A stretch of DNA of 64,000 nucleotides. Source: Podarcis erhardii. Its lineage: Eukaryota. The notes under the pieces were generated by a model. That model did not search any database. It was not told the DNA's origin and saw nothing but the letters and a program-made list of their open reading frames with translations. Positions 32,090 to 56,993 of the stretch are shown piece by piece; position 1 is the stretch's first letter, and each line of letters begins with the position of its first letter. The position numbers were made by a program, and so were the translations under genes. The stretch is from NCBI GenBank assembly GCA_964252035.1, contig OZ176208.1; one strand, given 5' to 3'.

Positions 32090-33306
32090 TGTCTCAGTAT
32101 TACTGAGCTTTTATATGAAGTGGTTGCAAGTGGTCATTAGGGGATTTGAAGCAAGGTGTCATCATCATACTGATGGCACTCGGCTCTATTTTGCTGTAAC
32201 AGCTGAATCAGGAGAGGCTATGCAAGCCCTGGATCTGTGCCTGGACTCAGTGGTGGCCTGGCTATGGACCAAAAAGCTGAGCTTGAATCCTGGCAAGACT
32301 GAAGCAGAGTAAGTGAGTAGTTCCCAGGTCTGGTAGACTGGTCAATTATCTGTTCTGGATGGAATTGCATTCCCTATAAGTACAACTTCATAGACTGCAG
32401 GGGATCCTAGATCCAACATATGTGTATTCAGGGGCAAGAGGTGCCTTTCAGCAGCTTGGGTTAGTGAGACAGTTTACAGGCCATTTCAACACCAGGAGAG
32501 CTTCATCTTGATAGACTTGATTACTGCAATGTACTGCATGTGGAGCTATCCTTGGATCTGGTCCAGAAGCTTCAGGTGGTGCAGAATGCAGTGGCTCAAT
32601 TACCTCCAAGCAATCCGTAACAACCCTGCTTTGAGAACCACACTAGCTGCCTATATGCTATGGACCATTTGTTACTAGTGTACAATGCCCCCAGAGAACT
32701 TGGGAGCAGATACCTTAGAGTGTCTCACTCCTTATAGACTAGCTAGATCTCTGAGAACAACAGGGGCTGTGCTTTTGGAGGCTGTGCTCCATAAATCAGA
32801 TTTCTCTATGCTCAGAGCATTCAGCACAGCAGTCACAGTATTATGGAACATCTCACCCCCCCCACCCCCCAGTGCAGGCGAGGCAGATGCTGGCACTGTA
32901 TGAGCTACAACATGCCATGAAGACATTCTAAAGCCAGCAAGCATTTTAGGAATGTCAATTTTCATCTGGCCACTCTTAATGCTGTTTCGTTTATCTATGA
33001 TGTACAGTGGTACCTTGGGTTAAGAACTTAATTTGTTCCAGAGGTCCGTTCTTAACCTGAAACCGTTCTTAACCTGAAGACCACTTTAGCTAATGGGGCC
33101 TCCCACTGCCGCTGCACCGCCGGAGCACGATTTCTGTTCTCATCCTGAAGCAAAGTTCTTAACCCGAGGTACTATTTCTGGGTTTGCGGAGTCTGTAACC
33201 TGAAGCGTCTGTAACCCGAGGTACCACTGTATATTATTTTGTATTCTAGTCTGTTGTAAATTGCTTAGAGATCTGATTACACATGATACACAAATATTTT
33301 AATAAA
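32090..33306 (+). mobile_element. Decayed L2-type LINE 3' portion, interrupted by a Tigger-like MITE
   Basis: YMK..VVIRGFEARCHHHTDGTRLYF...LSLNPGKTE, the decayed YADD region; degenerate C-terminus and AATAAAT tail. Confidence 0.75.
33005..33229. mobile_element. Tigger/pogo-like MITE
   Basis: TA|CAGTGGTACC...GGTACCACTG|TA; five near-identical copies in the window. Confidence 0.95.
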
Positions 33307-33495
33307 TCATAGTAGATAAGATCTAAATATAATTTTAGTTCCTGGATATGTTGCTGTCAGGGCTGGAGTCAGACTGCAGGTCAGCAAGCAAGGAGCAGAG
33401 TTTGTAAGAGAAGTTAAATCTTTATTCAAAGGAATGACATGCAACTCAGCCACGCTTCCCAGTAAGTCTTGCCCCTATAGAACAGTGGCCAGGAC

Positions 33496-34716
33496 CAGTG
33501 GCGTAGCGTGGGGGGTGCAGGGGGTGCCAGCCGCACCGGGCGCAACATTTTGGGGGGCGCACTCGCAGCTCTCTGCCCCTACCTGGCTCACTCCCGCTTG
33601 CAGCGGCGGCAGCAGCAGCCTGGCGAATAGGGCGCGCGCGCGCGCAGGGCGCACGGAGTGGCAAAGGCGAAGGAGACGAGGCAGAGGCTGCGGGCTGGCG
33701 GAGGAAACAGGAGAGATTCAGATTGCAAGCAAGCCGGGACGCTTTGTCGGCTTGGGGAAAGCCCTGCGGGAGCCAAGGGCACGCGCCTCGCTTTGCTGGG
33801 CGCAGAGGTGGGGAGGGAAGAATCTCCACCCCTCTCTCTCTCCAAAGGGGATTTACGCCGGCTGAGCTGGGTTTCGCCTCCTCCGCCACCGCCTGGGGAC
33901 AGCTCCTCGGAGGAGAAGGACGTTGGGGAGCGCAGAGAGGAATCGGGGGGCCGCAGCTCCAGCCATCGCCCATCGCCAGCAGTGTCCGTGCCTCCTTCGG
34001 GGGGCTCCTCGGGGGGCTCCTTGAGGAATCCGGGCAGCAGGATCTTGGAGACGCTTTGCCTGCGAGGCAGCTGCCCACAACTCCCGGGGCCAGCCCGGGC
34101 AGCCAAGTGAGACCCCTGCTTCTTCGGAAATTTCTCCAAAGGCTTCATCCCGCCGATGGCAGGGATGAAGCTGGGCCCCAGGACGAGGGGTGATCCAATG
34201 TGCCCTTTTCAGCTTAGGCCAAAATTGGGGATCAGGGGCGGTGCACTCTGCGTGCTTGCGGCGGGGGTGGAGAGACCTGCGATCAGACAGTCATGGCTAT
34301 GCCAGATGTTGGAGGCGGGCGAAGATCTGGCCAAGAAGGTGGCAGGGAGCTGCCTCTTTGGAGAAGGGAAACGTGTCCGGCGTTGGGGAGGGGGGGTGGA
34401 GCGGGGGCGCTGCTCAGGCCAACCTTACCGAGCGTGGAAAGGCTTTAGGGGGCGGGGTGCGCGGGGTCCTGCTTGACTCTCCCTGCAGGGGGAGTGACCA
34501 GAGGCGCCTCCAATGGCTTCGCGTCCTGACGCCCTCCTGAAGTGGTAGGCGGCGAGAGGCAGACAGGTGGATTGCCATCTACTCTTTGGCCGCGCCAGAA
34601 ACGTGGCGAGCGGGCGCAACATCTGGGGGTTAGGGTTAGGGGGCGCAAATCCACGGGTTAGGGGGTGCAAATTACTTGCCTTGCCCCGGGTGCTGACAAC
34701 CCATGCTACGCCACTG
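33496..34716. mobile_element. Non-autonomous hAT element carrying GC/CpG-rich cargo
   Basis: 12-bp TIRs CAGTGGCGTAGC / GCTACGCCACTG; perfect 8-bp TSD GCCAGGAC at 33488-33495 and 34717-34724. Confidence 0.9.
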
Positions 34717-35706
34717 GCCAGGACTGATGATTCCCACCATCAACACACTCTCAGGTTCTTCCTCTCCTGGATGTTTCCCAAGCAGTTTCAAACTATGCCT
34801 GGACATCTTTAGTTTCTGTTCTGCTCAACGCATCACTCTGCAGGAGGGGAGCTTATCACAGTAGAAGAGGCAAGCGGCCTTCTCTTCTGCAGCCTTTTGC
34901 CCCTCCTCCTCTGCTTCAGCATCTAAGTTGGAACTGCTTCCAGTCACAGACTCTCCCTGTTCAGCAAATCCTAGCATCATAGCATTACGTGGATAACCTC
35001 AGTAATGCAAAATAGTACAGCGAGTAGCCTGTGACTTTGTACGCTGACTTTTCCAAAGAATAGTGTAAAAAGAACAGCTAGCAGAGGGACAGATCTAAGT
35101 AAGAATATTCTAACACAATTAGCTCCAGTTGTGTTGATTTGAGACATTTAGGTTCTTTAGCTGCCTGTCTGTGTCATGGTCTACCTGATTCATCAGCGAG
35201 GCCTTGCTTTGAACTGATTGGAAAAGGTCCAAATCTCACTTTCAACTGAAGACTTGAGGACTGCTCATCCTTCTTTACTGAGGAGAATCAAGTTAGGTTA
35301 CAGCAAGTCTAATTTATGTAATTTTAACCCTAGTTATGTATGGCTGGAACCTTGTGGGCAAATGAAAGAATGAAAGGACAACTCTGATAGGTCAGTCCAA
35401 AGGCCCTTCTAGTCCAGAATCCTGTTCTCACAGTGGCAAACCAGATGCCTATGAGATGCCCACATGTACTCTCCCCATTTGTGATCACCAGCAACTGGCA
35501 TTTAGAAGCATAATACATCCAACAATTGAGGGAGAACATAGTTAATGTGACTGTTAGGCACCGACCGCCCTATCATTATTGGATAAGGACGGTGGTGGTC
35601 ATTACATCTTGTAAGAATGAAATCTGTAAGTTAACAATATGTGGTGTGAAGAAATACTTTCTTTTGTCTGTATATACTTGCATTGCATGTTAATAAATGC
35701 ATTGTA

Positions 35707-55475: not shown

Positions 55476-56993
55476 TCTTTATTGTCATTGCCCCCTCTCA
55501 GGGACAACAAAATTACCTGGCTGCTCCATCCACCCAGGTAGGGCACTCCACTCAAAATCAGAACAACAATAAAAACACTAATTAAAACAATACAGTATAA
55601 TACAGCAAGGAAAATTAGATGACTTTCAAAGTCCAGGTTTCCCATTCAGGGCCGAGATCGCTCTGGAGAAGAAGCTGTTCTTGAGACAGCTCGTTCTTGT
55701 CTTCATTGTCCTGTATCTCCGTCCCGACAGCAGGAGCTCGAAGAGACAGTGACCAGGATGCGATGGATCTTTTACTATGTCCAGTGCCTTCCTATGACAC
55801 CTTGTGGCATGAATCTGCTCTAAGGTGGAAAGTGGGCAGCCAACAATGCTCTCTGCTGCCTTAACAACTCTGCACAATCCCATCCTGTCCTGGGTAGTAC
55901 AGCTTCCGTACCACACACATAAGCCATAAGTGAGCACGCTCTCAATGGCACGGTGATAGAAGGCAAGCAGCAGTTTCTGCGGAAGATGGTTTTTCCTTAG
56001 GATTCTCAAAAAGTACAGTCTCTGCTGCGCCTTCTTCACAAGCCCCCTTGTGTTGACCCTCCAGGACAGATCCTCTTGTAATTCAATACCCAAAAATCTG
56101 AACGTTGTTACCCTCTCCACACAGACCCCATCAATCAAAAGTGGCTGGACATTGCTCTTCTGTCTCCTGAAGTCCACCACAAGCTCCTTTGTCTTCCTTG
56201 TATTTATGAGCAAGTTGTTAGCTCTGCACCACTCTGTCAGCTGTTCCACCTCATCTCTATAGTCCGTTTCACCCTCCCTTTCAGAGATGAGCCCAATCAC
56301 GGTTGTGTCATCTGCAAATTTGACAACCCTATTACTAGGGTGAGCAGCGACACAATCGTACGTGTAGAGAATATAAAGGAGCGGACTAAGTACGCATCCC
56401 TGTGGTGTTCCTGTGTTAGTCTTAAGCGTATTAGAGGTATAAGGGCCCAACTGAACCCTCTGGGGGCGGTCTGACAGAAAGTCCAATATCCACCCACAAA
56501 GTGATAACAGAAGCCCCGGATCTTCCAGTTTAGACACCAGACGTTGTGGTAGAATGGTATTAAATGCCGAGCTGAAATCTAAAAAAAGCAGTCTGGCATA
56601 ACCCCCCCGCTGCTCCAAATGTGCAAGAACGGCATGGAGGGCAATCGCCACAGCGTCCTCTGTCGATCTTTCCGTTTTATAAGCAAATTGGAATGTGTCC
56701 AGTCCCTCTGGTAGGCAGGCAATGACATAATTTCGTACCAGCTTTTCAAAGCACTTCATGATTATAGGTGTGAGTGCTACTGGACGAAAGTCATTCAGAT
56801 CTTCCGGGTTAGATTTTTTTGCTATTGGAACGATAGTAGAGGACTTTAGGCAGGATGGAACAATAGCCTGGGCTAGGGATCGATTTAAAATCCCAGTGAA
56901 AACTCCTGCTAGTTGATCTGCACAGTCTCTCAGTACCCTTCCAGCTACCCCATCTGGCCCTGTGGCCTTCCTTGGGTTGATTCCCTTCAGCAC
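55418..56993 (-). mobile_element. Rex1/Babar-type non-LTR retrotransposon, 5'-truncated
   Basis: RT frame followed by a 3' UTR ending CAATGACAATAAAGAT(ATT)n. Confidence 0.88.
55626..56993 (-). CDS. Reverse transcriptase ORF (partial ORF2) of the Rex1/Babar-type LINE
   Basis: 455 uninterrupted codons with [44 protein letters not shown] and C-terminal [12 protein letters not shown]. The start codon is not ATG and the endonuclease is missing, consistent with truncation. Confidence 0.85.

Follow-up and report, generated by a model that had tools for sequence, protein, structure and literature searches.

The sole CpG island of the 64-kb window (the whole stretch of 64,000 nucleotides that was analysed) is a transposon. 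It occupies positions 33496-34716 (1,221 bp), and in the reading that we consider very probable it is a non-autonomous hAT-type Pack-TIR, in which 1,020 bp of copied sequence from the host gene RAPGEFL1 lie between two arms of a miniature hAT element. It agrees with the definition of a Pack-TIR (Tan et al. 2021) in that both transposon ends can be identified, the interior is not of transposon origin, and the parental copy of the interior, the RAPGEFL1 5′ region as seen in contigs of other organisms, is unlinked to a transposon. The parts of the element are listed in Table 1.

Table 1. Parts of the element and of its target site, in window coordinates.
Feature	Position	Strand	Evidence
Left copy of the target site duplication (TSD), GCCAGGAC	33488..33495	.	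Letters read and repeat scan; one copy in the empty site of organism F
Left terminal inverted repeat (TIR), CAGTGGCGTAGC, beginning with the hAT-type CAGTG	33496..33507	+	Letters read, repeat and 12-mer scans
Left arm, from a high-copy hAT MITE	33496..33591	+	Depth in the millions (unique flanks: about 90); joints
Cargo piece A: RAPGEFL1 distal upstream region, about -731 to -465 from the ATG, with (GC)n run; host orientation relative to the gene	33592..33858	+	X12 record 11, X15 record 20, X17 record 27; L001, L003
Chimeric 186-codon ORF created by the rearrangement: 96 RAPGEFL1 codons, then 90 from antisense piece A and the left arm	33588..34148	-	Predicted ORF
Cargo piece B, coding part: RAPGEFL1 exon 1 codons 1-96 (MKPLEKFPKKQ...ETQLS)	33860..34148	-	Protein and profile matches, alignment
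Cargo piece B, upstream part: RAPGEFL1 proximal promoter and 5′-UTR region, about -464 to -1, with GC boxes; inverted relative to A	34149..34612	-	Host contigs
Right arm of the MITE, with TTAGGG-like units and a repeat of a left-arm motif (CGGGCGCAACAT..GGGG) in its inner 34 nt (34613-34646)	34613..34716	+	Repeats D6 and D7; joints 33523>34612 and 33582>34647
Right TIR, exact reverse complement of CAGTGGCGTAGC	34705..34716	-	Letters read, repeat and 12-mer scans
Right copy of the TSD, GCCAGGAC	34717..34724	.	Letters read and repeat scan

The element has a GC content of 65.5% and 88 CpGs, with a CpG observed/expected ratio of 0.69, compared to 40.9% and 0.26 for the 64-kb window, and all of the 500-bp windows that rank highest by CpG count lie inside it. 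The criteria of Gardiner-Garden and Frommer define a CpG island by a length of at least 200 bp, a GC content of at least 50% and an observed/expected ratio of at least 0.6, and with the above values over its 1,221 bp the element is formally such an island. Reading of the letters showed that 33634-33645 is a (GC)n run and that GC boxes lie at 34235-34241 and 34448-34457. A first-pass annotation of the sequence had described this block as the only strongly CpG-rich kilobase of an AT-rich window, with (GC)n runs and GC boxes inside and with 12-bp TIRs and an 8-bp TSD as its exact bounds, and each of these observations was borne out by the letters and by our scans.

The TIRs are perfect over their 12 bp and are flanked on both sides by a perfect 8-bp TSD, and an inverted-repeat scan showed that the TIR complementarity extends to 18 nt at 94%. 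Without mismatch, the TIR 12-mer occurs at the two element ends and nowhere else in the window, and when perfect TIRs of at least 10 bp combined with a perfect 8-bp TSD were sought, this element was the sole match in 64 kb, compared to none in 20 shuffles. The TIRs of hAT transposons are short and start with 5′-YARNG. The element shows the features expected of a member of this superfamily, namely the 8-bp TSD, a TIR that starts with CAGTG, the lack of a transposase of its own and an empty site in a relative (see below). On the TSD length and the TIR motif we class it as a non-autonomous, hAT-type DNA transposon, the superfamily call resting on these two features because no autonomous hAT with these ends was found within the 64-kb window. 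Self-BLAST of the window gave no second copy of the element or other member of its family, inverted-repeat scans gave no comparable TIR structure at the other GC-richer spots (46.6-47.9 kb and 59.6-61.0 kb), and no Rfam family matched within 32500-35700. In the literature, the TIR 12-mer was found in no paper, and a search for hAT MITEs of lacertids returned nothing relevant.

The surroundings of the element contain further repeats. About 260 bp to its left, positions 33003-33231 form an extremely high-copy repeat, which is probably a SINE: its summed depth is 4-30 million in the X1 run, compared to about 90 for unique sequence, its ends are sharp at 33003 and 33231/33232 in all four of the runs described below, and positions 33046-33078 within it consist of 1.9 repeats of a 17-bp unit. 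It has no match in Rfam. Another short repeat of high copy number lies at 35389-35495, with a depth of about 1.3 million in X1, and here the contigs diverge at about 35450-35453, again in four of four runs. Further away, on the minus strand at 55626-56993, a 455-codon ORF encodes a reverse transcriptase domain (RVT_1, E 1e-27) and, after it, an ALKBH8_N-type motif; this ORF is a LINE fragment.

We compared the public contigs of four sequencing runs with positions 32500-35700 of the window. The X15 and X17 runs, although labelled 'RNA?', were treated as DNA, since their contigs reach 46 kb and promoter DNA is covered, and no reading of expression was drawn from them. In organism F (run X12), a 528-nt contig of single-copy depth (record 10) runs from 33211 to 33485 and then directly through 34715-34970, with no extra letters; at the point of insertion it reads ...GAACAG TGGCCAGGAC TGATG..., with one GCCAGGAC. 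Organism F therefore lacks this insertion, and the element was inserted here by cut-and-paste transposition with duplication of an 8-bp target. The search for an empty site in relatives, which the first-pass annotation had put forward as a check on the insertion, was thus answered by a precise one. In organism A (run X1), a mismatch-free contig of depth 91, the single-copy level, extends from the left flank to 23 nt inside the element, so that this organism appears to share the insertion.

The empty site also bears on the idea that the block is the resident CpG island of a gene at this place, flanked by repeats through chance, or, in a variant, that RAPGEFL1 exon 1 is itself derived from a transposon. 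That the block formally qualifies as a CpG island is what one would expect of a resident island; a precise empty site in a related organism and a combination of TIRs and TSD that is unexpected by chance are not. The variant has to contend with an exon that heads RAPGEFL1 in turtles, birds and mammals, and that stands at a squamate locus without TIRs, and also with cargo contigs that reach multi-copy depth only in organism A, those of organism F being single-copy. Both forms of the idea were rejected on the basis of X12 record 10 and of the RAPGEFL1 profile and BLASTP matches given below, and we attach practically no weight to them.

The same runs contain the cargo at a host locus that has no transposon ends. 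In organism F, a 1,817-nt contig (X12 record 11) has a depth of 34, compared to 27-38 for unique flanks, and is thus single-copy; it carries the equivalent of 33606-33855, followed directly by the reverse complement of 33860-34612, with hundreds of unrelated bases on each side. The same pieces in the same relative orientation were found in organisms H and I (X15 record 20, of 4,663 nt; X17 records 27 and 28), where their identity to the window is about 96-97%; in X15 they also adjoin each other directly. Among contigs of more distant squamates, L001 and L003 carry piece A in the same orientation as the exon and upstream of it, L004 matches piece B only, and none of the fetched host contigs (L001, L003, L004 and L002) contains the TIR 12-mer. 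Hence, pieces A and B are contiguous at the host locus, but in the element B (the proximal 753 bp) is inverted relative to A (the distal 267 bp). In host coordinates h1-h1020, the order in the element is the left arm, h1..h267, the complement of h1020..h268 and the right arm. The overlaps at the junctions are short, with 1 nt at the border between A and B, inside a GCCGGC palindrome, and 2 nt (CG) at the border between B and the right arm. One of the contigs, L004 (Logan SRR12196012), has a GC content of 53-55% with a CpG observed/expected ratio of only 0.10, compared to 0.54-0.91 for the same region at the other host loci; SRR12196012 may be bisulfite-treated or otherwise depleted of CpG, and its nucleotide differences are therefore to be used with care.

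The cargo comprises about 730 bp upstream of the RAPGEFL1 ATG (the distal 267 bp and the proximal 464 bp) together with codons 1-96 of exon 1. In piece B, the GC content by codon position singles out one minus-strand frame, which begins with an ATG at 34148 and stays open for 96 codons as far as 33860. When these 96 residues were used as the query of a word-based protein search, six proteins with 59-92% identity were obtained, namely three ORFs of Logan contigs (88-92%), one further Logan ORF (69%) and the proteins of the geckos Gekko kuhli (72%) and Sphaerodactylus townsendi (59%); all were host orthologues, and no ORF from another copy of the element was among them. In the alignment, every one of the six extends by about 44 conserved residues beyond the end of the cargo, to ...PTAPHGHGCGA, followed by G in five and by E in one. 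The full exon 1 thus has about 140 codons, and the captured exon is truncated 44 codons short of the splice donor, which was not captured; in L001, the exon ends at a canonical donor (GCAG/GTAGGG, the slash marking the exon end).

A profile of the exon, searched against 1.84 billion representatives, matched a turtle protein of 633 aa, rap guanine nucleotide exchange factor-like 1 (XP_077662140.1), over its residues 1-140 (E 3.4e-47); this protein has a RasGEF domain at 398-574. The profile also matched bird RAPGEFL1, which likewise carries a RasGEF domain, and a cluster that includes mammalian RAPGEFL1. BLASTP of the 96 residues of the window against turtle RAPGEFL1 gave 71% identity, starting from Met1. 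Between the cargo exon and L001, 31 of the 42 nucleotide differences fall at codon position 3, and the codon changes are synonymous in 29 cases and non-synonymous in 8, a pattern which indicates that the exon is under purifying selection in the hosts. As judged from these matches, the donor of the cargo is the 5′ region of RAPGEFL1, an annotated and conserved gene start. The Gekko kuhli record (L002:10001-15087, CM122952.1) has RAPGEFL1 exon 1 annotated as the start of a 245-aa 'hypothetical protein', the rest of which is unlike RAPGEFL1; this gene model is likely a mis-annotation of RAPGEFL1.

Most non-autonomous hAT elements are internally deleted autonomous ones, and the GC-rich interior might, in keeping with this usual origin, be the remnant of a transposase gene rather than host DNA. 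However, a Pfam search of the eight interior ORFs found no transposase domain, with only two chance-level matches (E about 0.1), and none was found in any frame. Moreover, related lizards have a single-copy locus, without TIRs, to which the interior is 96-97% identical, and the interior encodes the RAPGEFL1 N-terminus, which is conserved in geckos, turtles, birds and mammals. An interior left by the deletion of an autonomous hAT, which the first-pass annotation had itself listed as the counter-case to host capture, is refuted by the TIR-less host contigs and the RAPGEFL1 protein matches, and has a negligible probability in our view; what was found instead is RAPGEFL1 DNA. The annotation had held that the interior lacks a transposase and that a host CpG island or first-exon region had been captured, ideally traceable to a unique locus without TIRs at the 5′ end of an annotated gene. 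The first of these claims is upheld, and the unique locus exists as the single-copy RAPGEFL1 contigs of related lizards; the capture itself stands with RAPGEFL1 as its source, but needs amending in that one of the two pieces is inverted relative to the host.

The arms of the element belong to a family of their own. The summed depth of the bins at both ends is in the millions in X1 and X12, and contig joints at 33582>34647, 33587>34650 and 33592>34654 correspond to family members of about 160 bp without cargo; the joints skip 1,061-1,088 bp. Such cargo-less members of about 160 bp are also present in organisms without the cargo-bearing form. Depths and joints together indicate that the arms, of about 100 bp each, are taken from a very abundant miniature hAT family with members of about 160 bp. 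As the inner 34 nt of the right arm repeat a left-arm motif, two family members may each have contributed a part, or a longer variant may have taken part. The right subterminal region (34620-34672) contains telomere-like TTAGGG units (GGGTTAGGGTTAGGG) and a 22-bp direct repeat (GGGTTAGGGGG[C/T]GCAAAT), which are possibly subterminal repeats of the family that bind the transposase. A scan of metagenomes with the right-end 22-mer returned two contigs that have only 27-35 nt of the end in common and are uninformative on the structure of the family. In L006:130-164 (Ga0056123_1115184), a GC-rich stretch ends with 35 nt (91%) that match the right end including the TIR, and in L005:441-467 (CEPZ01205243.1), an AT-rich stretch ends with 27 nt (96%) that do so; related hAT ends may thus occur in other eukaryotes sampled in metagenomes.

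The repeated motif in the right arm is also the point in favour of a macrotransposon, in which two miniature elements flanking the RAPGEFL1 promoter would have moved together by their outer ends, followed by an internal deletion and an inversion: the 34 extra nt (repeat D6; joint 33523>34612) look as if derived from two elements. The element, however, has no internal copies of the TIR, and the host contigs of three related organisms do not have the listed arm pieces beside the cargo. Two more events would also be needed, a trimming of the inner ends and an inversion with a breakpoint exactly at the border of cargo and arm, and we consider this origin improbable. The reading that we prefer remains that of two arms of the miniature family around a copied host segment.

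We then asked what the contigs say about the number of cargo-bearing copies. The cargo contigs of X1 have depths of 1,296 and 1,515, compared to 77-117 for unique flanks, a ratio of about 14-16 in which depth does not equal copy number, and in X12 the cargo is single-copy. The contig with a depth of 1,296 is collinear with the element across the junction of A and B and extends 24 nt beyond it, which is below the 31-nt rule for bridging, and no second site of insertion with a TSD of its own came to light. The contig with a depth of 1,515, representing the majority variant, has a 48-bp deletion (34284-34331) that is absent from the host orthologues and from the window copy, and the window letter at 34277 is present in X1 at a depth of about 92, which is the unique level. 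By contig depth, these data are suggestive of amplification after capture in organism A, with one copy of the window type and about 15 copies derived from a deleted master.

The X1 contigs and the host orthologues also served to define the changes that are private to the window copy, that is, positions at which the window differs from a letter common to X1 and two or more of the three host orthologues (all three at 9 of the 11 positions). These changes amount to a private divergence of about 1%. Six of the eleven destroy a CpG, five of these six being C>T or G>A transitions, and only about one base in ten of the cargo belongs to a CpG. The first-pass annotation had left the retained CpGs to either a recent insertion or an escape from methylation. 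Since so many of the private changes (6/11) destroy a CpG, the remaining CpGs are better explained by the youth of the copy than by protection from methylation, so that the recent insertion is retained and the escape is not. Hence, to judge from these substitutions, the window copy is probably a methylated copy in decay and not a protected island.

The simplest account of a cargo whose two pieces adjoin at the host locus while one of them is inverted in the element would be template switching during break repair. Read from the structure alone, the capture would have taken place during the repair of a break in, or of the excision of, a miniature element. One strand of the RAPGEFL1 promoter would have served as template for both broken 3′ ends, with priming at h1 by the left end and at h268 by the right; the extension of the left end would have halted on meeting the right primer (host positions 267 and 268), while that of the right end would have run to h1020. 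A tail-to-tail joining of the two new ends would then have given the left arm, A, the inverted B and the right arm, and the chimeric element could subsequently have been mobilised by a transposase supplied in trans. The microhomology at the junctions does not exceed 1-2 nt. The product of this two-ended repair would also arise if an inversion came after an ordinary capture, but a later random inversion would have to hit by chance the border between cargo and right arm, the other border being the former point of contiguity with A. If the captured promoter is active, transcripts would start from 34149-34612 on the minus strand and run out through the left arm, and they would carry the predicted 186-codon chimeric ORF, without a splice donor.

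Gene capture of this kind is known, but it is seldom multicopy in vertebrates, and the RAPGEFL1 case adds a named donor, with borders of the capture placed within a few bases, an empty site in a relative and a depth that suggests amplification after the capture. The pieces that are contiguous in the host and inverted in the element constrain the route of capture. For practical purposes, copies of gene starts carried by transposons will turn up among the CpG islands and promoters predicted for these lizard genomes, and reads from RAPGEFL1 exon 1 will map to several places. A wider conjecture, which we offer tentatively and regard as more doubtful than not, is that one or a few abundant miniature hAT families of these lizards repeatedly capture the CpG-island starts of genes by two-ended template switching at open promoters, and that the resulting chimeras reach tens of copies or more. 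Were it true, these lizards would be the vertebrate counterpart of the Pack-MULE system of rice, with working promoters or antisense-producing gene fragments scattered through introns, and the contiguous-but-inverted cargo would be a direct footprint of the capture reaction.

In plants, the capture of genes by cut-and-paste transposons is well documented. The Pack-MULEs of rice and other plants resemble the lizard element in being TIR elements that carry a gene fragment, often a GC-rich 5′ end, and rarely encode whole proteins; the fragments of Pack-MULEs are amplified with distinct TSDs, and for the lizard element contig depth suggests amplification (see also PMC8277862). They differ in that they are plant elements of the Mutator superfamily, which has long TIRs and TSDs of 9-10 bp, and in that there are thousands of them, whereas the lizard element is a hAT. 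In Drosophila melanogaster, Ssk-FB4 is likewise a multicopy TIR element in which the 5′ region and coding sequence of a host gene were captured by template switching and then transposed; it differs from the lizard element in being a Foldback element with a nearly complete gene and evidence of protein expression (PMC8277862).

Among animals, a survey of 100 genomes gave 370 Pack-TIRs, 208 of them hAT. Only four of the 370 were multicopy, and of these Xenopus tropicalis has three and alligator one; the model favoured for animal Pack-TIRs is capture by template switching with short microhomology, and the multicopy elements prefer GC-rich sources (PMC8277862). The system most directly compared here is Pack-hAT-N8_XT of Xenopus tropicalis, a multicopy element that carries 291 bp of the CAPSL 5′-UTR (Tan et al. 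2021, PMC8277862). Like the lizard element, it is a non-autonomous hAT with intact ends and TSDs around a GC-rich cargo from the 5′ part of a host gene, its parent locus lies elsewhere without transposon ends, it is present in more than one copy (as contig depth suggests for the lizard element), and its proposed origin is template switching during repair or replication (PMC8277862). The lizard element differs from it in its donor, RAPGEFL1, in the larger size of its cargo (1,020 bp, with promoter, 5′-UTR and 96 codons), in an apparent copy number of about 15, as judged by contig depth, compared to three to five in the frog, and in the internal inversion of its cargo at a point that is contiguous in the host.
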